Positions 3,001 to 51,876 of a stretch of 64,000 bases of DNA are shown here, piece after piece. A program made the position numbers and the translations under genes. Position 1 is the first letter of the stretch; the number at the start of each line of letters is the position of its first letter. Under the pieces are notes generated by a model, which was not told the DNA's origin, did no database searches, and was given only the letters and a program-made list of their open reading frames with translations. Source of the DNA: Chlorokybus atmophyticus (lineage: Eukaryota > Plantae > Mesostigma and Chlorokybus algae); assembly GCA_009103225.1 (NCBI GenBank), contig RHPI01003124.1, positions 122,428 to 186,427 of the forward strand. The letters run 5' to 3'.

Positions 3001-6000
3001 GAGCCCCTCGCGAGCCCGTGGGAGGAGAGACTCAACCAGTTCCAGAAGATGCTCGTGCTGCGGTGCCTGCGCGTCGACAAGGTATCCAAGAATGTGTCAC
3101 CGCCTTTCAGTGCACGCGCAGGCACACATGTGCACAACCACATGCGTACACATGCACAAACGTGTGCACACGTCTACGTACACAGGCACGCACGCATACA
3201 GTTGTGTCGGTGTGTGGGTTTATGTAGGTGTGCACGTGTGTGCATGCGCAAGCGCACGTGTTCCTACATACACCCACAGCACACTCACATACACACACAT
3301 GGACACGCGCACACGTACACACACGCACACACGCACATACGCGTGTGACTGCAGTAGAAGCATGCGCACCTGCGCTTGCATGCGTGCATAGGCTCATCGT
3401 TCACTGACAGAACCGACACTCCGCAAGTACGCGTCAAACATGCATCCCAACGCAACCACATGCCATAGCCCACACAACAACTCACACCCACCCATCTCCA
3501 GGTCCAGCTGGCCCTCTCCGACTTCGTCTCCTCCCACCTCCTCCCCCGTTTCGTCGACCCTCCTCCCTTCGACCTCCCCTCTTGTTTCCGCGACTCCTCC
3601 CCTTCCTCCCCGCTCATCTTCGTGCTCTCCGCCGGGGCCGACCCCATGGCCGATCTCCTGAAACTCGCGGACGAGATGAGGTTCGGGAAGAAGTTCGAGA
3701 AGGTGTCGCTGGGACAGGGGCAAGGACCCAAGGCGGAGAGGCTGCTGACCCTGGGGATGGATAGGGGGATGTGGGTGTGCTTGCAGAACTGTCACCTGGC
3801 GGCGAGCTGGATGGCGACGCTGGAGAGAATCGTGGAGAACATACAACCGGATAAGGTAGGGTCACAACAATGTAGCTGTGAGTGTGGCGTGCGCACACGC
3901 ACAGCTGTGTGCTTGTGTGTGCGCGCGCGCGCACCCATGCAAGCACACAGCTATCATATCGAATCAACGTGCGTGTACACGCACAGCTGTCGGTGTATAG
4001 CGCGCACATGCATGATTGTGTGTGTCCGCGCGCTCACAAGCATGGATACATAGCTCTGATGTCCGCACACACTGTGCGTGCGTGCGTGCGCCGCGCGCGC
4101 ACACACACACACGCACACAGCTTTGGCATCAGTCACTTCACACACGACACCTCGCGTTCCACACAATGCTCCTGACTTTTCCTTCTCCCTCCCCTTCCCC
4201 CTCCGCCAGGTCCACAAGGACTTCCGTCTCTGGCTGACCTCGATGCCCTCCTCCCAGTTCCCCGTCTCCATCCTCCAGAACGGCGTGAAGATGACGCTGG
4301 AGCCCCCCCGCGGACTCAAGAGCAACCTCGCGAGGTCGTACGGACGCGTCACCGACAAGTACCTCGCGGCGTGCGAGAAGCCGGAAGAGTGGAGGAAGCT
4401 GCTGTTCGGGATATGCCTCTTCCATGCCGTCATACAGGTAGACAGGGTGGGGGTGGGGATAGAAGTTGTTGTTGATGATGTTGTTGAGGTTGTTGTCGTC
4501 GTTGTTATTATTGTTGTTGTTGTTGTTGTCGTTGTCGTGGTCGTTGGCGTTCGTCATTACTGAACACCACCACCACCAACAACAACAACAACAACGACCA
4601 CGACCACAGAAGTAGTGGTTGTGGTGGTGATGATGATGATGAAGATGATGATGATGATGATGATGATGGACTTGTCGTTGTTGTTGTTGTTGTTGTTGAT
4701 GATGATGATGACACGACTGTTGCTCTCAGGAGAGGCGTAAGTTCGGTCCTCTTGGTTGGAACATCCGTTACGACTTCACCGAGGGCGACTTGGGCGTTTG
4801 CCAGACCCAGATGCGCATGCTCCTGAACGAGTACGAGTCCATCCCCTTCAAGGTGATCCGTTTTCTGTGCGCCGAGATCAACTACGGCGGCCGCGTCACG
4901 GACGACAAGGACAGGCGACTCATCAACAACCTGCTCGTGACATTTGTCAACGACGATGTCGTGGCGAATAGCGATAATAGTACGGAGTACTCGTTTAGTG
5001 CGTCGGGAGCGTTTAAACTGCCTGTGGCGGGGCTTGCGGGTGATGTGAAGGGCGTATTCGAGCATATACGAGCCCTACCAGCTGCGCCGAAGCCGGATAT
5101 ATTTGGGTTGCATGATAATGCGGATATCACGTCGGATCAGAATGAGACTTATGCGCTGCTTGCTACCGTGCTGTCGCTACAACCACGTGTCTCAGCTGCA
5201 GCAGGTGCGCGTGTTGGTACAAGTCAATCACCACGCATACTTTTGCTGTATGTGCGTGTGCGCGCATGCGTGCGCGTGCCTGTGCATGTGTACACGTGTC
5301 TTGACATGTGTGCTGCAGGCGGTATCAGCAGGGAGGCTGCCATAGAGAAGGCTTGCACGGACATCCTCGGCAAGGTCCCCGCTCTGTTTGACAATGCGGC
5401 GGTAGCGAGCAAGTACCCCGCGACGTACCGCGAGAGCATGAACACGGTCCTCGCGCAGGAGTGCATCCGCTACAACGGCCTCCTGCAGGTCATGAAACGG
5501 TCCCTACAGGACGCGCTCAAAGCGCTAAAGGGACTCGTCGTCATGTCGAATGATCTAGAGATGGTCTGCAACAGCATCTACGACAACCAGGTGCGTGGGT
5601 GTCAGTGCGCGCTCGTGTGTTGGTTTGTCAAGCGGAAAAGCATGCACATATTTGTGGGGACATACAGCAGGCACATAGACACTCTGTGTGACTGATGTTG
5701 TATACGACTTGTTTATTCAGCGTTGACTCTCTGATCCAACAATCACGATGAAGTCATGCATGTATGTTCTCCACTTTAGGTGCCAGACATGTGGGCACAA
5801 AAGGCCTACCCTTCACTGAAGCCGCTGTCTTCGTGGGTCAACGACTTGCTGGAGCGTTGCGAGTTCGTTTCCACATGGATCAAAAACGGGCCGCCGCCAG
5901 TCTACTGGATTTCGGGCTTCTTCTTCCCTCAGGCAAGTTGGGGGTACAACACACAAGTTTCCGCATCATGAACGCACGCACGTATAATGATATACTTATT

Positions 6001-6897
6001 GTGGGCTCCTCCTGTGCAGGCGTTCTTGACGGGTACGCTGCAGAATTACGCGCGCAAGTATGTGTATGCCATCGATACCGTGCAGTTTGGATATGTTGTG
6101 CTTGACGACAAGTCCGACAAAGAGATCACTGCCGGTAGGTTCTTATGAACTCAGCTAGCGTGTTGTTGCCTTGTGAGAGCAACACGCTGTGTGCAACAGT
6201 CTTCTCATGTCAACCTGCAGTTACCGTTCACCTTAAGTCGCCAATTGCAATGATACCTGTGTGTGAAAGGTCTAAGGTTTATATGAGCGCAGGTCCCGAG
6301 GACGGTTGCTACGTCCGGGGTCTTTTCCTCGAAGGCGCTCGTTGGGACGCGACAACGCACATGCTGGGCGAGTCGCACCCCAAGGAGCTGTACACGGACA
6401 TGCCGGTGGTGTGGCTGCGGCCCGAGCAGAACGCCAACAGCGCCCAACGCGCGGGAGCCAACAAGGTCAAGAGCGGAGTGTACGACTGCCCAGTGTACAA
6501 AACCCTCACGAGAGCGGGTGAGTTTCAGATGTGAATTGTTGCTTGCAACACTGGAGCATGCATTGCTGTGAGGGTGGTCAATGAAGAAGCGTAAGCGCGT
6601 GCAAGCTCCTGCTTTCTTTTGTCACCTCGCGAGAGTGTTGATTGAGAGCAACAGCGCATGCATATAGGAGCACTCATGCAACATTTGCATGCATGCAACA
6701 GATGTGTCAAGACAGGGACTGATTATGCTTGAAATCCTACCTGACTTGAACACTTGTTCGCTTGTTCTGTTGCAGGGACACTTTCGACAACGGGCCATTC
6801 CACCAATTTCGTCATGTACATCGAGCTGCCAACGGACAAGCCGCAGAAGCACTGGATCAACCGCGGAGTGGCACTTTTCTCATCTCTGATGTTCTAA
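1..6897 (+). CDS. Axonemal inner-arm dynein heavy chain (DNAH1/DNAH7 type), 3' portion; starts upstream of window
   Basis: Exons join in frame: <1-228, 480-707, 943-1018, 1093-1403, 1729-2109, 2221-2386, 2467-2621, 2711-2815, 2884-3081, 3502-3855, 4210-4437, 4730-5204, 5319-5590, 5780-5932, 6020-6134, 6293-6517, 6776-6897. Dynein motifs: [82 protein letters not shown] then TAA. Confidence 0.96.
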
Positions 6898-7100
6898 GTT
6901 TTGGTGCATAATGTCATCAATCAACACCCATTCATGCGAATGAACATAAGATTTCATATGACAATCAGTCAATAAGTCAGAGTAGAGTACAAAGTAGTGT
7001 ATTATACTGCAGGGCAGTCTATGTATAATCAACATCGCTATCAGGAACTTGTAAGTGTACCACTGTAATAATGATGGTTGCATGTAAAGGAGACTCGACT

Positions 7101-9499: not shown

Positions 9500-12070
9500 T
9501 CGAATCGCCAAAAGCGTTTTTGCTTATGCCTGTAGTCTAGGATTGCAGCAGACGGACGGTCGCGATGAAGTGTGGCGACGTAGATAGGACGTGAGCAAGG
9601 TGTGAACTGGTCTGATCATGGGCTGATCGGTGTGTTCGGTGCGTTCAGCGCTGTCGTAGACGCTGCGGATGTGTTCGACGTTTTTTGACGGTCGTTTGTC
9701 AGCGCTTATACCAGTTTTGTGTGTGGCTGGCGATGTTGTGGAGTCGTTGTCGTCAGCCGTTGTGGTTGGTGTTGTATATCTGTTATCGGCTGATATGTCG
9801 TAGCGCATCGCCGTTGGCGACATGATGTCGCCACTGTGCAACGTAGTGTGGTGTTCAAATTTTGGGTTATTGTTGCGGGGTTTGAATTCAGAGCAGTGTT
9901 TGCTGTGTTGGTGGTGATGGCGGCGACGGGTGAGGCGGCGATTAAAGCGTTGGATGAGCGGCAGCGACAGAGGCTGCTGGCGTTTGAAAAGCAGAGAAAG
10001 GAGCGCTGTGATTGCCAGAGAGACTATGCCAAGCGTCGTCGCAAAAAAGACAAGGTATATGCCGGTGGACTTAAGGCTGACCTGGGTTTGCAGAAGTTTA
10101 GGATGAACTACTAGTATATTCTTGGCTGCGTTGGTTTCCGGTAGGCCATGGCGTTGGGACGGAGACGACCTTGTCATACAACCCTAGTATCTAGTGAGTG
10201 TTTGTATTGTTGCATTAGTTTGCAGTCATTGTCTTGCTCATCATTTGTTTTGAATGCTTGTGAAATGCTAACACTGTGTGGGCTGTCATCAGACATGTGG
10301 ATATCACATAGCGTGTCTGTTGCCACTCTAGTGGGCTAAATTACTGCGGTGAGTGGTGATGCTATGACACGTTGGGTAGCATTGGTGTCATAGTCGCTCC
10401 AATGTTGAACAGTGTTTACATTGTTTGTGCTGCAGGATGATGACGTGGACCTGGAGTATTCGGCGTCAGTAAAAGAGGACCAGGAGAGTATCGCACCTTC
10501 TACGAAGAACCCTTGTCAACGGGAGCATCTTTTGAACGCAAACATACTAACAATTAAACAATGCGCAAATGAGACTTGCCCCCCTCCCCCCCCCCCTCCG
10601 CCAGGTCCACAAGGACTTCCGTCTCTGGCTGACCTCGATGCCCTCCTCCCAGTTCCCCGTCTCCATCCTCCAGAACGGCGTGAAGATGACGCTGGAGCCC
10701 CCCCGCGGACTCAAGAGCAACCTCGCGAGGTCGTACGGACGCGTCACCGACAAGTACCTCGCGGCGTGCGANCAACCCAGTCGACGCTGGCGGCAGGCAC
10801 GGCCCCATCCACCAGCATTCACGTCATGAGCACCTGCAGAACATATGCACATGACATCACATCATACGCATACACATACACAGCACCGTCACGCTCCACC
10901 ACTGCCTGCAAATGCATCACACACGCATGCAAGCAGGCCAGTAAACAACTGTGCCAACCAAACATCACCCAGTGGAGGGTGAAGCCTGTTGCCTATAAGC
11001 GATTTCACATGCACAAAACTACCACCGGATTACGACCCCAAACATAGTACACACCTGGTCCTGCCGGCACGATGGGATGCCAGCCATCGTCCTCAATATG
11101 TGGAGGAGGATGAGGTAGGCCAAGGTTGTCAACATAACCATCGTCACCTCCCAGCAGTGGATGAAGACTCCACTGACCGACCTCAAACGGCAACCACTCC
11201 GTGTCATGCCACTGCTCAACCCAGTGACGCCGGCGACCGGGATCCACATCACAATAAGTACCAATCACCCAGCGCGCAAGTGGCACGCTGCCTACCACAT
11301 GCTCCACTACCAAGAGTTCACTTCCCAAACGCTGTGGGAAGCCAGCAAGCCCTTGCCGAACACGATGCAAGCTAAATCTGAAACCAAACCCCCCGGGCAA
11401 CTCAATATGAAACTCCCTCACACCCGGCGCAGACCCCACTTGCGATGCAGCTATATGCACCGGCCATTCAATTGATACCTAACAAGTGTTAACAACCACA
11501 CATTCAGCTGCGACAACACACAATCACCATCACAACAGACCAACAATGGCATTCACTTGCTCGTAGGCAGTCTCATAGACAGACTGCCTGCGCCTGATGT
11601 ATGACAGTGAGGCGCTCAGCGAGAAAATAATGCCGTCGAGGCTGGCGCCATTAGCACCTACATGCCCGCCATGCCACGTGATCGACTCACCGCCCACGTC
11701 GCCCGCAATCCCGCCGCCGTCCACATCAAACCCCGCACCAACCACACCAACAGCAACCACCAGCACACGAGCAAATGGCGCCAATTCAACGTGGCACAGA
11801 TGCTGAAAAGCGGCAGAATGGACATAAACGACTGTACCGCCCAACAACCCACTAAATACGTCAACCGTCTACTCGCAAATAACAAACGGCGGTCGCACTG
11901 ATAACAGCGCTGTCAAACCCTGACACAACAGCGTAGCACACCCCAATGCCGACATCAAAACACGCTCACTCGACGCTGAGCCAGCAGCGCTAAACGTGCC
12001 GTCGCCGTCGCAAAGCGCATTTTGTACACCCACATCAACGTCGCTAGTCGCAGTTCAGCGCAGCATTATC
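9500..12070. mobile_element. Putative decayed DNA transposon with two convergent spliced ORFs
   Basis: Plus ORF MAATGEAAIKALDERQRQ..KRRRKKDK splices (donor 10054, acceptor 10435) to DDDVDLEYSAS. A minus-strand ORF at 11005-11847 points toward it. Short inverted matches link 9642-9706 to 11906-11996. No transposase motif recognised. Confidence 0.3.
10592..10771 (+). repeat. ~180 bp copy of dynein intron end plus exon (source 4197-4376)
   Basis: Appears identical by eye to 4197-4376, including the acceptor CCCCCTCCGCCAG; ends at the single N at 10772. Confidence 0.95.
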
Positions 12071-17452: not shown

Positions 17453-20400
17453 ATGCTTAGCGGCGTCGTGAGCGTGGTGGGCGGGGTAGGTGGCCGCAGC
17501 GTTAGCGTCGCTGTCGCTGCAGTCGCCGTCCGCAGGCGTTGTGCCACGTGGCGCAGATCGGGGGTGGTGCAGCTGTCGTCGTCGTCATCTGCCTGCGCGT
17601 GGCCTGGGGTGGTGTCCGCCTCCAGGAGTCTGGCCTGCAGGGCGATGAGCCAGGCTGCTCAGGTGGGAGGCATGGAGGCCCAACCTGTCGCCTCTGGCGA
17701 CGACAACGGGGGCATGGGCGTGAGCTACCTCACCGCTGCGGCAGCGGCTGCCATTGACGAGCGCCTCATGGGCTCCTTGGGCTTCAGCCTGGATCAGCTG
17801 ATGGTGAGCACCTGGGCTGGAGTGCATCCTGACCAGCGTTGAGTGGCGTAATTGACTGTGGTGGTTTGATGGCTGTTGCCAACCACTCCACTACTGGGAG
17901 TCTAAGCCAAGGTTTGCGACAATGCCTGCACTTCTATTCCTGGTGCTATCCTGGGCTTTCGCATGCATCCATGTGCGTGATAGCCCAACAACTCCGACGT
18001 CAACAGTTCAGCATGTCTACTTGCATGCATGATGCTCATGCTTGCATGTCACAGAGTTACGTTGTTCAACCTGATGATGCTAACACCTGTGTGACAGTTT
18101 TTACTGCGAACAATCTGTTGTAACACAATAGATAATTCGCAATGCAACCTCGCAAAAAGCAGTGCTGTTGGTGATCTAAACATATTACTGCTATGCGGCT
18201 TGTGCGTGTTGTTTCTTGTGATGTCCACGTATGCTTACAACATGCTTTGCCACTCTCAGTGCCAAGCCGTAACTCGCCGCAATTTATGTCGCAGGAGCTT
18301 GCAGGCCTCAGTGTAGCAAGCGCCGTTTCAGAGGTGCCACTTTACCATTGCTGCAATTTGCTCGCACATTACCCTGCACGAGCTGTGCCTTGCAACTTGA
18401 GCCCACATCACCGCTTCCATCGAACAAGCAGGCGATGCATGTTCATGCATACAGACTTGTGTTTCTGTACCACCTTGCCAGGTTTACTCCTCAGCAACAC
18501 ACCGTTCGATTCTGATCATTTGCGGCCCGGGCAACAATGGTGGTGATGGTCTGGTGGCCGCGCGGCACCTCTACCACTTTGGCTACACAGTTGAAGTCTG
18601 CTACCCGAAGCGAACAGACAAGCCAACATATAATGGACTGGTAGTGCAGGTCAGCATATGCAATGCTGCTGTGTGTGTAGACACGCATTGTAGTGCTCTT
18701 GGCGTATGGGCTGTGTGTGCCTTACCCATCCTTATTGCAGTGTGAAAGCTTGGGTGTTCCCTTCATTTCTCCGGACACTCTATCCAACAAGTTGACCGAG
18801 TACGATATTGTAGTTGACGCCATCTTTGGCTTCTCGTTTTCAGGCACGTGTTGCAGGTCTTCTTACTTGAGCTTGCACAATGCTGTTCTTACTAGCCTAT
18901 CTCCCCTTTGCAGGTTCACCTCGACCGCCTTTTGACCATATACTCAACTTGCTCAAGCCAAGCAAAGGCACCAAGCTGCCGGCACTGGTTTCTGTGGACA
19001 TACCGTCCGGTTGGCACGTAGAGGAGGGTGATGTGGATGGCATGGGTTTACGACCCAACATGCTAGTGAGCAATGTCGACTTGACGAATACTTGACACGG
19101 TTCAACAGTTGGTGGCTGACTACTACTCGTGTGTTGCTTACAGGTATCGCTCACAGCTCCAAAGTTGTGTGCTCGCAAGTTCACCGGCGAACTTCATTAC
19201 ATTGGCGGGCGGTTTGTTCCACCTGGTATCGTGCGTGAGTTTGACTTGAGACTGCCTAGCTACTCGGGATCATCTGCGTGCGTGCGTGTGGATGCGGCAG
19301 TCAACGGCAAGGACAATGCTGCTAGCGACGGCGTGGCGGACTTGCGAAGAGACTACCGGTCTCGGCAGCTGCTTGAAAGCGACACAACTGAAGACCCTTA
19401 TGAACAGGTGTCTCTGTGGTTTATACCCACACTGCATGCAGTAATGTGAATGTCATTGCCCGTTGTCATTCTCTCACATGCACAAGCCTCGGTTGACTGC
19501 TTGTATGTTGCAGTTTCAAAGATGGTTTGGAGAGGCTGTGGGCACCAGCGGCGTTGATGAGCCCAACGCGATGACATTGTGCACTGCAGACGGCAACGGC
19601 ACACCGTAAGCAATGACTGAGTCTCTGCAACACACCTGCATGTTGCTTATGCAGTTCAGCAGTTATGGCATCCAACGATATTTGTGCCACTGTTGCAGGT
19701 CTGCGCGCATGGTGCTGCTCAAAGGCTTCGATCACAGAGGCTTCGTCTGGTAAGCGGTAGTTTTCAACCATTACATAATAGCTATACCTGGCAAGCTGAC
19801 GACCACCTTATACGTGACAGGTACACCAATTATGAAAGCCGAAAAAGTAAGGATTTGCAAGAGAACCCACGCGCGGCACTTGTATTTTGGTGGTCTCCAC
19901 TAGAGCGACAGGTGACATAACATCGTCAGCTGAATGAGCACCTTTGCTGTGTGCAACTGTACAGTACGCTGGCACATTCTTGCATCCTCGTGAGAAGCCG
20001 TATTAGCTGTGTTTTCAACAAGACTGAAACCGCATGCCAACAACAGGTTAGAATTGAAGGCGATGTGGAGCGGGCCGATGATGCGGAGTCAGACGAGTAC
20101 TACCAGTCCAGGCCCAAGTCTTCTCGACTCAGTGCCTGGGCCAGTGCACAAGTGCGCTATGTGTTGAGTGTCCACCTGCACGCTTTGCATCATGCTGAGC
20201 AGACCATGCGTGCTCAGTCAAGGTCTCACAACCACACTGACTTGCGTTGCCATGACTCGACAGAGCTCTGTGCTGCCAAATAGAGAGGTCTTGGAGCAGA
20301 AAGCCGAAGAGTTAGAGGCAGAATACGCAGACATGGAGTAAGTGTCAGTGCAGTTGCTTGCACTGCAGCGCAAATATAGCCAAACATGTCTTTGCGTGGT

Positions 20401-20783
20401 TTCCATACACCCATGGTGGTAGGGCACACAGCGTTCGAAATGTCCCATATTATGTCCTCAACTTGACCCTCTGTGTGCAGGACTGTACCGAGGCCTTCCT
20501 TCTGGGGTGGGTTCAGATTGCGACCGCGCTTGTTTGAGTTCTGGCAAGGTCGGAGTTCGCGTCTACATGACAGGTAGGGCGTGCTGCAAGCTTGCAATGA
20601 GTATACCTGCAATTGCGAAGTGTGTACATTTCAGCGCGCACACATAATAGTGCGCATACATACACGCACTCGTAGGACGTGGTGCCAAAAAACTCAAATT
20701 GGCACCTTGTACGCCTTGTCCATTGCAGGATTCAGTACCGCTTGATAGATGGGGAATGGGTAACAGAAAGGCTGTCTCCGTGA
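17453..20783 (+). CDS. PDX3: Bifunctional NAD(P)HX epimerase (YjeF_N) / pyridoxine-pyridoxamine 5'-phosphate oxidase with transit peptide
   Basis: Motifs across exons: [130 protein letters not shown]. Confidence 0.95.
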
Positions 20784-21726: not shown

Positions 21727-22028
21727 AACTGAACCCGATTAGCTTCTTATGTTTGCAGAAAGCAGCATACGTGGTCCTGTAAAAGGGTGGGTGCTGGCGG
21801 CGGCGGCGGCGGCGACGGCGGTTGGGGCGACTGCGCTGGCGACTTCTGCAAGGTGAGCGTTGTGGAAGCGTAGATGTGGCTGTTAGCTCGCTAGTTACGC
21901 CCTTGCAAAACCCCGATTTGACTGCTTGCTAATTGTGTGGTTGCTGTGTACGGTTTGTGACGTTGCTGTGAACTGTCTTTTTGTCTAGCAGCGGCGGTGT
22001 GGCCGTGCTTGCCCTACGATCATGGACA

Positions 22029-25000
22029 ATGGGCGAAAATGGGGAACACAGTGGCGCAGCTACGTCGTCAGCGGAAGCTGCGTTCAAGCAGGTTCGTGCG
22101 TTCGTGCGGCCCTCAGCAGTCACATATGTTTTACTGAGCGCTGACGACAATTACCCGATTAACGCAAGTTGTCTCCACATTTCTTATTGTGAACGAAATT
22201 TTTGTTCAAATTGTTCAGCTTTGTCAGTTGTCACTTGCATGCATGCTTGCATGGCCGTTAACATGCAGGTAGTCAAGTCTCCAATGCTGCGCAAGTGCAA
22301 CTGCAAAGCGAGCTTGCACGCTTTGCAGTTGCGCATTTGTGTCTGCGTGTGCTGTTTACGCAATTACTAAAATCATTGCCAGAAAATGGTGTTCACATGC
22401 ATACTAGTCTGCAAAGCCCAGCTTCACTTGCCATAGCAAGTCTTTGCGCCCATTTTAGGGCTTCCTTCAAGTGGATGCGTGTGTTTGCATACACGTGTTG
22501 GCACGAAGCATGCATTGCTAATGGCCTAGGTAAAGAAGCCAAATCTCTTTTGTGTGCAGACCGTGGACCTGGAATTGCAGTTAAGGTCTCTACTGACAAA
22601 GAAGAGCCCATTTGACCCAGCAGTTCGCAGCTTGCGAAATGCGATCTGCGACAAGTATGAAGCCCTTCTGTTCTTGGACTACGACTTTGCCCAAAGCAGA
22701 GATGTTGAGCAGCTGCTGTGGAAAAGCGTCTTCTACAGGCGCATTGAAGACTTTCGCGCACGCATCCGTAAGTGCGCAGCCGCAGTGGCAGATCCAGCAA
22801 CAAGCGCAGCTGCTACTGATCAACAGCAAAAAGTCACCACAGCTTTCCGGGGGTTTTTAGCCGAAGCAATTGGTTTCTATCACACTCTCATACGGAAGCT
22901 CCAAGCCAAGTTTGAACTTGACCAGGTGTGTTGAGGCATCACCAGTTGTGCCCTGTCGCCTGACACCCATACCAAGTTGTTCTGGGGGNNNNNNNNNNNN
23001 NNNNNNNNNNNNNNNNNNNNNNNNNNNNNNNNNNNNNNNNNNNNNNNNNNNNNNNNNNNNNNNNNNNNNNNNNNNNNNNNNNNNNNNNNNNNNNNNNNNN
23101 NNNNNNNNNNNNNNNNNNNNNNNNNNNNNNNNNNNNNNNNNNNNNNNNNNNNNNNNNNNNNNNNNNNNNNNNNNNNNNNNNNNNNNNNNNNNNNNNNNNN
23201 NNNNNNNNNNNNNNNNNNNNNNNNNNNNNNNNNNNNNNNNNNNNNNNNNNNNNNNNNNNNNNNNNNNNNNNNNNNNNNNNNNNNNNGGGGTGACAATGGT
23301 TCACAAGAAGAGATTAGCACAAGTGTACAGCAGATGGTTGTGACCACGTGAACAACATATGCTGTCATAAGGTGTTGCTGCATTGTCGGTCAGAGATGCA
23401 GTTCTGCTGTTAATGTGCGTTGTAACGGTGGTGCTGGACAGAATGCTCCGGGCTACAGCAAAGCAGCGGAGGAGCCCAGACAAGGCGTTCTTTCTGTTCA
23501 CCGTTCCCTCGTGTGCTTGGGAGATCTGGCTCGTTACCAAGAGCTGCTTGCCTCTGGTGACAACTGGACACGTGATTGGTCAGCGGCGGCCTCGTATTAC
23601 TTGCAAGCTCTGCGCATTTGGCCTGATGGCGGAAATCCACATAATCAGGTATGCCTCTCGTGCATGCAGTACTGCAGTAGCGGCAGCGAATCCTCAAGAG
23701 GTGTTTTCAGTTGCGGGGAGTTTGTGAAGTCCTTTGCAGTCAAGAAAAGTAGTCACAATGTCTGGCAACACAAGTGATGACACTTGCTTTGTATGCCATT
23801 GCATTGCTCTTCACGCATAGCAGTGCTACTTCTTGCGGCTATGGCATGCAGCTTTTAGCAGTACCCCATTGCTCACAATGTGACTAGCTCGCTGTGTCTT
23901 GTCAGTTATGGCATGCACTAGTTGTACATGTGGACTCATGATGTGCGATGCTCGCAGCTTGCTGTGCTGGCAACCTACGTTGATGATGAGTTGACAGCAG
24001 TCTACAGATATGTTCGTTCAGTTGCTGCAGCAACACCATTTCCTTTCAGCCGCAAAAACCTTCAAAGACAATATGAGCAGGTTGGTTAGGTGCATGTTGT
24101 GCATACAATATCTGCAGCATGTACTGACCTTATATGCAGAACGCCATCAAGTACGCCAAGTTAAAGACATTGCCAATGTCGGATGGCTCCAGCAAGGTTC
24201 AAAGCGCTGGTCAGGCTGTGCTCAAGCATCCCGCTAAACTCAATGACAATGACTTCGTTGCTGTTCGGCAACACTTTTCCACACGATATGTGCACTCGCA
24301 TGGAATCCTTTTTACAAGAACAAGGTGCTGCTATTTGGCCTGGAGCCTCATGTCCTTTTTCTTTGTCATAACTCTTGATCTCGCAGGCACACATGTTGAC
24401 TTGTCTCGTTGCTGTGCATGCTGCAGTCTGGGTTCCTTTGAGGAAGTTTACACAGAGACCATGCGGGATTTGGAGGCGCTCCTGAACTCAGCTGATGAAG
24501 CACTCTCAACAAACGTCGTTCCAAGCGCAAGAAATCACACCGGTGTTGGTGCTGCCGCTGGCGGTTCTGCTATTCCTTTCTTGCCCGAGTTCGTGATAGC
24601 TGTGTACACAGGCAAGTTTTGGCTTCAGCAGTTGGTCCGATGCGTGCACTTGATATGTATGCTGAACCAGTGTTGTTTTACAGTGAGCAACATTTCTCAG
24701 CTGCCAGAAAATCATCAGCCAACATACGCAGAAGTGCTGCAGCACTCAAAGCTTTACCAATACGCGTTCACCATGTTGTATGACCTTGTGGGACGGCTGC
24801 TGCGTCGATTACTTTCTTACACCGAACCAGTTGCTTGTCCTTTGCTGTCTGTGTGCGTTCTGGCGCTGGAGTACTTGAAGTCGTTTCCTGAGTTGAAGCA
24901 CAGCCACGAGCCCTCAGTCCGAGAAAAGCTTGCGAGGGAGTTCATGTGGAGCCAGATGGCAAAAGCACTGACTCTGCTTGCCGAAAGCTTGACAGAAGAT

Positions 25001-26591
25001 GTACATGAACTGAACACAGCTTTGCCAGAAGACTACGAGGTTCTGGGCTTCCCTCCCCTACCCACTCGTGCTGTGTTGGGAATGGCACCATCATCTGTGC
25101 ACAGCAGCAATGCCTTTGTCCTCAGCAACCAGCACCAGCGCGCGGCCAGGATGCTTGCAGCAGGTTAGTTTCTTGCTTACCAGGAAACAAATGCCTTTGA
25201 TTCTTGTGTAGCTGTTTCTGAAGATTCCTGCTGACCTCAGCGCTTCATTCGAGTACTGAACGACAGTTGCGCGCCACCACATTGTGTTGACTCATCCTTG
25301 TGTACTGACAGGGCTTGAGCTGGCAGATGGTGCTAGTGGTGCTCTGTATGTTGATGCCAGTCAGCGCCTCTTCAGCACCGCTCCAATCCCGAAGCAGCAG
25401 CAGCAGCAGCTGCCACCACAACAGTTGCAGGTTCAGCCCGCTGCTGTTGGTATGCTGCCTGAGGCGAATGGTGCACCAACTGGACAGCCAAAAGCAAATG
25501 GCGATGTTGATGAAGACGAAGTCATTGTCTTTCAACCTGTCAAGCCGTCCTCGCCTCTTAGCAATGCATCTCCAGCCAGTGCTGCCTCCCCTGCTAGCAT
25601 TCCGTTATCCACTAGTCAGGAAGAACGGGAGGTTCCGCAGTATGCTCTTCCCCACATGCAGGTGTGTATTTTTCATCAGCGGGTGCCATAGTCATGTAGT
25701 CCCATGCATCAAGAGTTTCTCATACATCTTGCTTTGTAGGGTTTGTTTGGTGCGATAGGGCCAACCCCCGGTACGAATGCTGTTGGCGTGATTGGTGACC
25801 GCTGGCAGCCGGCGGGCCAGACAGCCAATGGAGGTTCCAGCCTCTTCTCAAGTGGGTTTCACTTGAGTACAAAACAAGGCCTGGCATCCCCGCCGCCACA
25901 GACACCTCCTGCTCCCGGTCTGTACGATGGCTATACGTCCCCCAGGTTCAGCCCAACGCTGCCATCACAAGCAGCACCGCAGTTTGGTGACTTGCCCTCC
26001 TTGCAGCAACAGGCTAATCAAGCAGCTGGCCACATTGGAGCAGGGTTTCCTTCACAAGGGCCTCTTTTTGGTGATGTCCTTGCAGTGCAGCAGCAACTCA
26101 ATCCGCACCAGCAGCAGCAACTCATTGCTATGCAGCAGCATCTCTTGGCACGTGCATCCGGCAGTCTGCGAACGGGATCATCAACCCCAGTGCCCCAGAC
26201 TGGTCACCCCGCTGCCATGCAGGAATTCAACCAGGACTCGTCGAGCATGTTTAGAACAGGAGGTGCACGCTCTGGCTTGAAGGTTCCTCCAGGATTTGGC
26301 CCGCAGCCTGCTTTGCGCCCACAAAGAACGCAGGAAGCGCAACTGTGGCCGTCAGGACTTTCGAGCAACCAGCACAACTGGCTGGATGCGTTCTCGCATG
26401 TTCGTCCTGCGCTCGATCCCAATAGTGCCGGCAGCATGTACAATCCGTGGGCTTCGTTGAACCTAACAGCCCCAGGTCGCGAGTTTGGCTCAGCATTGCC
26501 ACCTCGTGGTGATGTTGGTTCGCTGCCGTTTGCGGGTGGCCAGGCATACCATGCCCAACCGAACAACTCATCAGGACCACCAACGGGGTGA
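22029..26591 (+). CDS. SMG7: SMG7/EST1-family nonsense-mediated decay factor
   Basis: YEALLFLDYDFAQSRDVEQLLWKSVFYRRIEDFR, HRSLVCLGDLARY, AASYYLQALRIWPDGGNPHNQLAVLATY, ALPEDYEVLGFPPL, DEDEVIVFQP, then a long Q/P/G-rich tail. One interval falls in the N gap. Confidence 0.93.
22989..23286. other. Assembly gap (N run) inside SMG7
   Basis: Run of N flanked by G homopolymers. Confidence 0.99.
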
Positions 26592-27089
26592 TGGCTTCAG
26601 GTATGCTTTTCTCCTCCCTTTTGCCGTAGGCAAGCAGTGTGCATTGATAATACTTGCCCTGTACTCAACCTATTCTTGCCCGTGCAGGATATGCAAGCTT
26701 GCACCACATGTGTGTCGCGCTGTGACATGGCACAGTCCGCCCTGCCCCGGTTGAATCGTATCGGGGACAGAAACGAGTGACATCAACAGTGCTGAACGGA
26801 TAACATTCTACGGTGAGCGCCACTCGTATCTGCCCTCATCAATTGGGCAGTTTTGAGCTTCCCCCAGCTTGTGAGACAAGACGATATATGGCGACAGCTG
26901 GCATACTGGAGTTCATCACACAAGACTGTCACGCACAGTCCTTTTGAAAGTTCAGGGGTTGAGACGGTCAGACACCACTGAGCTTTGGCAATTTGGTCTG
27001 GCGTCTGCGTGGTAGCTAGTTGGTACCCTTGCATTAATCAGCTCGAAGCCCGACAGGCTGGGCCAGTGTGGGGCCTTATCAGGCTGCCC

Positions 27090-27400
27090 CCCTGCCACGT
27101 ACAGCAAGCATTTGCATGCACGCGCTCGGCGTGTGCCTTAGTGTAGGTTTCTTCATCCGCAGTGTGTTCTTGTAGGGACGCATTGCTAATGGATTGTCTT
27201 TGCTTGTGAACATTCATGCTTTGCACGAGATGGCCTGTTTTTTATTGAGCTACCAAAAGCGGATGCGAGGTGCCTCTTATACTTATAGAGAGTTGTGCAG
27301 AAGATGGCTCGAGCAGTGCATGGTATGTTGCCTGGTGAAGGGCAAGGACATGTTTTGTACAAATTACCAGCCAGGACACCGACCGCTGCACGTCCAACAT
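27090..27400 (+). mobile_element. Penelope-like retroelement remnant (RT thumb / C-terminus)
   Basis: Broken frames YSKH...RFLHP, CEHSCFARD, MRGASYTYRELCRRWL parallel LYSKQ..., THFISAM and MQAGYA..HRWM in the copies at 45.7-45.9 kb and 53.6-53.9 kb. Confidence 0.45.
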
Positions 27401-27990
27401 ATGGAACTGCAACAGTTGACTAATGTAGCACGGCCTCAGAAGCATGGGTCGTTGGGAATGTGCAGTTTTGTAGTTGTTTGCACAGCCCTATTACTTATAT
27501 ATATGCAGTAGTTGTGAGTGTCACAAGGTACAACTTTATTGCGCCGCTATGTGTAAATGGTTACTTGCTAGCAAAGACAGGGGGGCAGGCAAGATACTGG
27601 GACGGGCAGAAACTTTCTTCAACACCTGCTCTACGGAATTACACTACGTGAACGCATGTGCATGCAGTGGTAGGCAAAGGCAGAGTGGTACGAGGGAATG
27701 AAACGGGACCTCCTGCAGGCGGAGGGGCGAGTGATTGTGGCAGCCAGAGTTCCCAGTGGCAGCTCGTGTGGCTTGAGTGGTGGCCTGATTGCTTTGCCTC
27801 ATTGCCTCCGAGTGTCTATCGTCTGTTGCTAGTCAGCAGCTTTTCTCTCCTCCAAGTCTTGTGCGAGTGCTGACAATTGATGCAACCTCTGATGACAATA
27901 CTGTTTAAGCTATTCCAATTACGCGTGGCGTACTTTTGATTGCCGTCAGGCCAGAACTGTGCGAAGGAGTGCTAAATGCACCTGTACTGT

Positions 27991-28718
27991 TCAGGAGTTT
28001 CCAACAACAATGCCAAGTTTTGCGAGCTCAGTTCGGGCCTCAACTATGTCCTGCGCAGCAACGCCCGGATCAAAACAACCAACAAGCCATGCCGTTTTTT
28101 CTATGCGGAACATTCATCAAGGTTACTATTGTTGCATTGTGTTACCTTTTGTAGAAGAGCCACTTCGCGGTCGCATGTCGGAAACACCGCCACTTCGTAG
28201 CCGATGTATGCGAGGGAGTAACAGCCAAAAGCGACCAGAGCCCACAGCGGCAACTGCAGCAAATCAAGCAGAGTGAGAACACACAGGATGCTCCGTGACT
28301 GTGCTGTTCCATTCCAAATCCAGTACACGTATGTACGGAGCGTTTTACCGAGGCAAGATGCCATACTGTTGTGTGCTGAGTGCTGCAAAGACGACGTTCT
28401 GGCTCAGTAGCTCAGTGAGATTCACGTGCAACAGTATGACACCCTTTATCTGACACATGCAGAGCAATCACCGCTGTATATGACACCACAAGTTGTGCTT
28501 ACAGTTGTGCGCAACATATTCAGCCAAGAGCACATGCAATGCAACCATGCTGCAAGTGCTAATCATGAGTCAAGTTATGTAAGTCATTGAGTGACTGTGT
28601 GTCTCACCACTTCTATGACGGCCCTGGTGCTTGGCTCCAGCTCAGATATCGAGAGCAGCTTGAGCCACAGACCCCCGAGCAAGATGGCGCCGCCCAGCCA
28701 CCACACCACCCTCCGCAT
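27991..28718 (-). CDS. DPM3: Dolichol-phosphate mannosyltransferase subunit 3
   Basis: Exons 28718-28608, 28253-28146, 28050-27991 give MRRVVWWLGG..LPLWALVAFGCYSLAYIGYEVAVFPTCDREVALLQKDIVEARTELAKLGIVVGNS*. Confidence 0.9.
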
Positions 28719-28759
28719 CGGTACGTAAAGTGTAAGAGCAGGCGTCACATTACATCACG

Positions 28760-29200
28760 CCTTTGACGGCCACACCCTCGCCGACACCGACACCAACACC
28801 GCTGCCGCCTGCTGATCACACTGAAAGCAATGATCAGTGAACAGGCCGTAGCGTTGCTGCTGCTCACATTGATGATCCGGTAGCGAGATCACTGCACAAG
28901 TCAATCAGCTTGTCAACTTGACTGATCCCATTCGGCTGCCCAGATTTTGGCGGTTAGGTTTGGCGGAGGTGACGGCGGGGGCTGTGGCGGCGGCGGTGGT
29001 GGCGGTGGTGGGCGACAAGGTGCAGGACATCATTGGGGTCGTGGTGTTATTTAGCGTCGACTCGGAGTGGGAGCAGCTGAAAGCTTAGTCTAGGTTTTGG
29101 CGCCATCAGGGGTTAGGGTTTGTGCGCAGCCTGGGAGCAGGAGCTGGGAGGTGGAGGCTCGCGTCGGTGTAGTTGTAGTTCGGTTGGCAAGTCACTCTCT
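28760..29200. promoter_or_regulatory. Bidirectional promoter between DPM3 and SAP gene, with TGATC cluster and telo-box
   Basis: Head-to-head ATGs at 28718 and 29218. TGATC cores in 28812-28817, 28831-28836, 28873-28877 and 28922-28927; TTAGGGTTT at 29113-29121. Confidence 0.55.

Positions 29201-48921: not shown

Positions 48922-51876
<2,955 letters not shown>

Follow-up and report, generated by a model that had tools for sequence, protein, structure and literature searches.

Is the pair of introns in the 3′ untranslated region (3′UTR) through which flowering plants are known to regulate SMG7 by nonsense-mediated mRNA decay (NMD) an invention of angiosperms, or was it already present in algae? 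The question is raised by a 64,000-nucleotide (nt) stretch of the streptophyte alga Chlorokybus atmophyticus (contig RHPI01003124.1 of assembly GCA_009103225.1, positions 122,428 to 186,427 of the forward strand; hereafter the window, in whose coordinates all positions are given), where a plus-strand SMG7 gene is followed by two candidate introns, one beginning 9 nt and the other 134 spliced nt after the stop codon. In Arabidopsis, both 3′UTR introns of SMG7 are efficiently spliced, the distal one triggers NMD of the exon-junction complex (EJC) type, and correct splicing of the distal intron needs the proximal one (Nyiko et al. 2013, PMC3711448). This near/far layout occurs in 30 of the 35 annotated angiosperm SMG7 mRNAs (PMC3711448), with the proximal intron 10-40 nt (mostly 18-30) and the distal one 64-209 nt (mostly 139-170) after the stop (PMC3711448, Suppl. 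Table S7B). The angiosperm 3′UTRs mostly measure 0.5-1.2 kb, their internal UTR exon measures about 100-180 nt, and introns within 50 nt of the stop are NMD-neutral (PMC3711448). An earlier note on this DNA had pointed to the angiosperm autoregulation through a near and a far 3′UTR intron, accurately according to the same source, and had suggested that the architecture may reach back to algae. Our analysis points to a probable stop-proximal intron and a plausible distal one in Chlorokybus; the complete reading, two introns serving as an NMD feedback module, is one to which we give somewhat less than even confidence.

The gene that carries these candidates has its coding region at 22029-26591 on the plus strand and, judged by its domains and nearest relatives, is a plant-type SMG7 orthologue of this early-diverging streptophyte. 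Homologue-guided tblastn and frame checks yielded a model of nine exons and 936 amino acids (aa), with exons 1-5 at 22029-22091, 22560-22925, 23442-23648, 23958-24080 and 24140-24324 (the N-terminal ones fixed by homologue tblastn) and exons 6-9 at 24427-24611, 24684-25163, 25312-25661 and 25740-26591. In the plus-strand exons between 22.5 and 25.2 kb, Pfam detected the EST1 (PF10374, E = 9.6e-12) and EST1_DNA_bind (PF10373, E = 2.4e-10) domains, and phmmer related the 14-3-3-like N-terminal domain to the solved human SMG6 (4UM2, 1.6e-32) and SMG7 (1YA0, 3.3e-18). The LWK and GDLARY motifs, which we take to be phosphoserine-binding residues, are kept in the alignments. The last two exons (135 + 282 aa) had no Pfam match at E <= 0.01, and no PIN domain; the C-terminal region is of low complexity and rich in Q, P and S. 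It shares the motifs PPGFGP, WLD and PF(P/A)G with land-plant SMG7.

A full HMMER search across 1.84 billion representative proteins retrieved a 960-aa public protein that is 100% identical to the SMG7 of the window, P0147 of EukProt EP00898 (Chlorokybus atmophyticus jgi/Chlat1/5453/Chrsp36S00418). After this self match, the best among 1,900 matches came from Riccia, Cymbomonas ('Protein SMG7'), Diphasiastrum, Taxus, Psilotum, Welwitschia and Tarenaya ('protein SMG7'), kinship being judged from ranked matches and motifs. Pfam domains, the identical public model and plant SMG7 proteins as nearest relatives bear out the identification of the gene in the earlier note, as Chlat1/5453 does the algal source that it had supposed. 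This public model has the same start, junctions and last residue (...NNSSGPPTG) as ours and differs solely in one 72-nt GC-AG intron. The intron is in frame at 24612-24683 (CAG/GCAAGT...TTTTACAG, the slash marking the splice junction), and the JGI model reads through it, gaining 24 intronic-looking residues, GKFWLQQLVRCVHLICMLNQCCFT. A second GC-AG intron with the same CAG/GCAAGT donor is found in the dynein gene of the window (5933-6019), where the conserved GFFFPQ/ junction backs it. Within SMG7, intron 2 contains a run of N (assembly gap, 22989-23286), on either side of which positions 72-106 of the EST1 profile are unmatched; a short exon may be hidden there, although some homologues align straight across the gap. 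When the last coding exon was searched for homologues, none came up; the word-indexed database apparently returns only proteins of <= 400 aa and for that reason would have missed full-length SMG7. Three further loci with SMG7-like N-terminal domains align in that domain only, which makes them uninformative on 3′ ends, and were dropped.

Any 3′UTR intron presupposes that translation ends where the model says. The TGA at 26589-26591 closes a 282-codon open reading frame (ORF, 25743-26591) at the position given in the earlier note, and it is the true SMG7 stop on the evidence of the public JGI model, which matches at 100% and ends at the same TGA. The first 9 nt of the 3′UTR, TGGCTTCAG, follow at 26592-26600. 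A coding sequence (CDS) that bypasses this TGA through an upstream donor and runs into the next exon, an objection that the earlier note had raised against its own proposal, appears extremely improbable. A GT at 26588 (GGG/GTGATG) does exist and, joined to 26688, would add 22 codons. However, this GT, the only one upstream of the TGA, scores 2.7 bits as a donor in the matrices described below, the Cys-rich peptide of 22 codons that it would append (ICKLAPHVCRAVTWHSPPCPG) is unlike any SMG7 tail, and the public model stops at the TGA. Stops occur in all three frames across 26688-26812, so that this 125-nt segment would be non-coding, and on these stops together with the 2.7-bit donor, extension of the CDS past the TGA was ruled out. 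A bypassing CDS would still end before 26813, and the second donor at that position lies beyond the reach of any coding sequence.

Splice sites were scored with position weight matrices built from 33 introns curated in the window (7 in SMG7, 16 in an axonemal dynein heavy-chain gene, 8 in a MAP kinase (MAPK) gene and 2 in a SAP/Tho1-MOS11 gene) and applied leave-one-out. Homology and conserved motifs guided the curation, which replaced an unsupervised ORF-joining finder that proved too noisy. All the curated introns are short, with a range of 59-468 nt, 111 nt or less in half of the cases and a main class of 59-116 nt; their donors are GT[AG]NG-like after G and their acceptors YAG, and 2 of the 33 are GC-AG introns with CAG/GCAAGT. 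Chance was gauged in three ways: on 1 Mb of sequence simulated with a first-order Markov model, on the antisense strand of the curated genes (13.6 kb), and on all 4,479 stop triplets of the window, a control that is inflated by real introns.

By these measures, the signals of the predicted stop-proximal intron (26601-26687, plus strand, 87 nt; CAG/GTATGC ... TTGAT at position -40 ... CTTGCCCGTGCAG/GA) exceed chance. The donor, located 9 nt after the stop as the earlier note had said, scores 10.8 bits, at least as high as 30 of the 31 true donors under leave-one-out, and its 9-mer is identical to the homology-supported donor of SMG7 intron 3 at 23649. The acceptor TTGCCCGTGCAG, likewise correctly placed with its end at 26687, scores 7.2 bits, above 22 of the 33 curated acceptors. 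Together they total 17.9 bits, in the top decile of curated introns. Pairs as good arise in the Markov simulation at a rate of 0.07 per kb and are absent from the 13.6 kb of antisense sequence, which gives a chance expectation of ~0.003-0.01 (~0.003 in the first 40 nt after the stop), and 1.0% of the 4,479 stop triplets have an equally good pair within 45 nt. The segment is T-rich (0.34), as are the short introns of this genome, and its length falls inside the main class; composition and branch-point motifs are consistent with an intron here and uninformative for the distal candidate. We consider it quite probable that the predicted intron 26601-26687 is real.

It could still be supposed that neither candidate is spliced and that both are chance consensus matches in an ordinary unspliced 3′UTR. 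Scores from the donor and acceptor matrices, taken by themselves, predict introns to a limited degree: in the curated genes, read in sense, a threshold of 18 bits admits 16 true and 4 non-intron GT sites, and one of 14 bits admits 28 and 44, respectively. This explanation nevertheless remains unlikely, given that by chance ~0.3-1% of stops should have a pair of >= 17.9 bits within the next 45 nt, that the 26601 donor repeats the 9-mer of a confirmed donor of the same gene, and that the length and composition of 26601-26687 are intron-like.

The distal candidate is the one on which EJC-type NMD would depend. Removal of the proximal intron would leave a predicted internal 3′UTR exon of 125 nt (26688-26812, plus strand), which puts the donor ACG/GTGAGC at 26813 some 134 spliced nt (9 + 125) past the stop, as the earlier note had calculated. 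That note was right about the position of this second donor and wrong in calling it strong: at 6.4 bits it ranks 11th of 31, an average donor of a kind met at chance frequency. Its ACG exon end is acceptable, because the homology-supported MAPK intron at 50367 uses an ACG/GTGAGT donor. The acceptor implied by the end of the interval given in the note (CACGCACAG, 26938, for a 126-nt intron) turned out to be weak, at 3.3 bits, and is bettered by TTTTGAAAGTTCAG/GG at 26955, which scores 7.6 bits and would close a possible intron of 143 nt (26813-26955, plus strand). The 26813-26955 pair totals 14.0 bits, the median of true introns. As far as its sequence goes, the distal candidate is compatible with a real intron and indistinguishable from chance, and thus plausible but unproven; if the proximal intron is real, we put the chances of the distal one at about even, a figure that depends mainly on the prior from land plants.

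The large gap in statistical support between the two candidates speaks for another possibility, in which the intron next to the stop is genuine and the GTGAGC at 26813 resembles a donor by accident. Feedback would then need the long-3′UTR mode of NMD; otherwise the proximal intron would be a neutral remnant, such as a onetime coding intron left behind in the UTR when the C-terminus was truncated. The protein has 17 aa after the PFPG motif in Chlorokybus versus 45-75 aa in land-plant SMG7, which would fit a shortened C-terminus beside such an old intron. Introns within 50 nt of the stop, being NMD-neutral, also escape counter-selection (PMC3711448), so that no selection would have acted against this one. 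On the other side, the 125-nt segment, with its stops in all frames, is unlike the C-terminal tails of land-plant SMG7, and its length, that is, the spacing from acceptor to donor, lies in the angiosperm range, though chance gives such a spacing in ~11% of cases. On this evidence we consider a lone proximal intron less likely than not.

For the distal site to be part of the mature mRNA, the transcript must extend beyond it. TGTAA looks like a poly(A) signal in this genome, to judge from its strand-biased avoidance within genes (4 sense versus 14 antisense occurrences in six gene bodies, p = 0.03) and from the dynein heavy-chain gene, which has no sense TGTAA in 6.9 kb and then three at 155-190 nt past its stop (7050-7087). 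To our knowledge, the UGUAA signal is reportedly confined to later-branching chlorophytes. The first plus-strand TGTAA after the SMG7 stop, our candidate poly(A) signal for this gene, lies 960 nt downstream at 27552-27556. Downstream of it, a small multi-exon DPM3 gene (PF08285, dolichol-phosphate mannosyltransferase subunit 3) occupies ~27994-28800 on the minus strand, convergent with SMG7, and its position leaves room for an SMG7 UTR of this length. Because a minus-strand TGTAA sits on the DPM3 side at 27643-27639, the 3′ ends of the two genes would meet near 27.6 kb, some 50-90 nt apart. With the end placed from the TGTAA at 27552 and the convergent DPM3, the presumed terminal 3′UTR exon would occupy 26956-27570 (plus strand), and the SMG7 3′UTR would measure ~0.98 kb in the genome and ~735 nt after splicing of both introns, or 878 nt with the proximal intron alone removed. 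If the TGTAA is indeed the signal, either length would lie above the ~300-350 nt from which a 3′UTR counts as long.

Polyadenylation between the stop and 26813, which the earlier note had also named as a difficulty, would remove the distal site from the mature mRNA. The TGTAA signal is deduced from few genes, which leaves some room for such an early end. We judge it very unlikely, as a search of the plus strand for TGTAA and for AATAAA-, ATTAAA- and AATGAA-type hexamers found none in 26592-27551, and as the TGTAA of DPM3 at 27643-27639 points to both 3′ ends lying near 27.6 kb. The region 26400-27800 has no coding potential, and searches of it against Rfam and for repeats, made in case it contained a snoRNA within an intron or a transposable element, came up empty.

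If both introns are spliced, the complete feedback reading could work as follows. Translation would end at the TGA at 26589-26591, and the 87-nt intron 26601-26687, 9 nt further on, would be removed; after the 125-nt non-coding exon, the second intron (26813 to 26955 or 26938) would be removed as well, in an mRNA that would run to the TGTAA at 27552. The complex deposited at the junction 9 nt past the TGA would be displaced by the terminating ribosome, leaving that junction NMD-neutral. The EJC lying ~20-25 nt upstream of the +134 junction would persist and recruit UPF3/UPF2 to UPF1, so that SMG7 protein would promote degradation of the mRNA that encodes it and NMD capacity would be held in check by negative feedback. 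The long 3′UTR may add a second, intron-independent NMD input, and the place of the proximal intron could perhaps be explained by an Arabidopsis-like need for it in distal splicing. The NMD sensitivity of Chlorokybus SMG7 mRNA is put forward here purely by analogy.

Several points weigh against this reading. The NMD-relevant junction is the weakest part of the evidence: donors as good as that at 26813 arise by chance at 1.8-1.9 per kb, the UTR has three more of equal quality downstream (27270, 27323 and 27528), pairs of 14.0 bits occur by chance at 0.5-1 per kb, and an equally good distal candidate is present at 21% of control positions. The poly(A) site is deduced from a TGTAA, a motif whose avoidance in gene bodies is only modestly significant. 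The PPOX gene upstream has a similar distance of ~1 kb between its stop (~20783) and the next TGTAA (21778), and the SMG7 UTR can therefore not be claimed to be unusually long for Chlorokybus. No Chlorokybus transcripts were found by protein and contig look-ups, among them exact-protein ones for the public model and for the terminal ORF, or by an exact-match metagenome scan, in which the end of the CDS had 0 matches among metagenome contigs. Finally, as far as the searched literature goes, EJC-dependent NMD has been shown in no alga, and our searches of the literature retrieved nothing relevant on SMG7 or NMD in Chlorokybus or in other streptophyte algae.

The two-intron feedback module is favoured by its likeness to that of angiosperm SMG7 (in Arabidopsis At5g19400, introns S7I.6 and S7I.7). 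The genes are orthologous. The Chlorokybus proximal distance of 9 nt is just under the angiosperm range of 10-40 nt, whereas the candidate distal distance of 134 nt falls within 64-209 nt and beyond the 50-nt NMD threshold; the predicted internal UTR exon (125 nt against about 100-180 nt) and the inferred spliced 3′UTR (~0.75 kb against mostly 0.5-1.2 kb) are likewise similar. If both introns are real and placement is taken as uniform along the UTR, accident would produce the proximal position with odds of ~4% and the distal one with odds of ~9%, so that under this proviso an accidental layout would be unlikely. The differences are that the algal introns are predicted only, the distal one at chance level, whereas those of Arabidopsis are efficiently spliced, and that the apparent poly(A) signal is TGTAA in Chlorokybus and an A-rich element in angiosperms. 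Sequence likeness between the UTRs was neither expected nor seen. Chlorokybus, a unicellular or sarcinoid alga, diverged from the line of land plants at the base of Streptophyta, and for it NMD sensitivity is argued by analogy.

Feedback on NMD factors is also found outside plants. In animals it works mostly through a long 3′UTR or an upstream ORF and not through a conserved pair of 3′UTR introns, and the cis-elements of animals and fungi have no positional homology to the SMG7 3′UTR introns. The logic is the same in these systems (SMG5, SMG7, UPF1 and others), in which the NMD-inducing 3′UTR of an NMD factor buffers the pathway, and in each organism that has been studied SMG5/7 genes are among the targets of NMD (Rayson et al. 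2012, PMC3284524). Plant Barentsz likewise uses an intron more than 50 nt past the stop as an EJC-type NMD sensor, in a different gene and without a conserved NMD-neutral proximal intron (PMC3711448). Closer to the present case, the moss Physcomitrium (Physcomitrella) patens has, in the data on smg1 mutants given by Lloyd et al. (2018, PMC6009662), an SMG7-2 gene of the same family that is raised in these mutants and is an NMD target. To the extent of those data, the NMD control of moss SMG7-2 indicates that feedback predates flowering plants; the moss is where NMD sensitivity was measured, and Chlorokybus branches much deeper.

On these grounds we propose, tentatively and with less confidence than we give to the reading of the Chlorokybus gene itself, that the common ancestor which Chlorokybus shares with land plants already had a two-intron SMG7 3′UTR with EJC-type autoregulation, so that this layout would not be an angiosperm invention. 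The ancestral layout, which we suggest with the same reserve, would have combined an NMD-neutral intron by the stop with an NMD-triggering intron ~130-170 nt further on, kept since the base of Streptophyta.

Some other features of the locus deserve mention. On the 5′ side of SMG7, a very strong donor at 21853 (10.7 bits) and an acceptor, TTTTGTCTAG, near 21987 lie upstream of the start codon and may delimit a 5′UTR intron. The annotated ATG at 22029 is preceded, 7 nt upstream, by an ATG in another frame (22022), which may open an upstream or overlapping ORF; if that ORF is real, it could be one more element acting on NMD or on the control of translation. The gene upstream of SMG7 (17600-20783) is apparently a plant-type fusion of YjeF_N (NAD(P)HX epimerase) and pyridoxamine-phosphate oxidase (PPOX); by eye and motif search it has WGGFRL, EFWQG and SRLHDR motifs and ends in ...WVTERLSP* at ~20783. 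In the dynein heavy-chain gene, an exon at 4187-4376 recurs 6.4 kb downstream as a 190-nt copy of 99% identity (10582-10771) beside assembly N, which may stem from an error of assembly or from the recent duplication of a fragment, and the intron at 4438-4729 is filled with a (GTT/GAT)n trinucleotide microsatellite. Many introns of the window contain CA/TG-rich simple repeats, which give rise to long spurious ORFs rich in H, T, C and V.

Should the proximal intron alone prove real, Chlorokybus SMG7 would be an interesting gene with an ordinary 3′UTR intron. If the two-intron feedback module holds, it would be a very deep-branching case of a known regulatory architecture, and confirmation of both introns would trace an NMD feedback element with a defined cis-architecture, of which there are few, from flowering plants to the deepest streptophyte branch. 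It would support the view that intron- and EJC-dependent NMD is ancestral in the green lineage, rather than late or vertebrate-specific. It would also suggest that the puzzling retention of a proximal intron that is 'NMD-irrelevant' reflects a very old functional coupling, and Chlorokybus would offer a simple system in which to study how proximal and distal introns are coupled.

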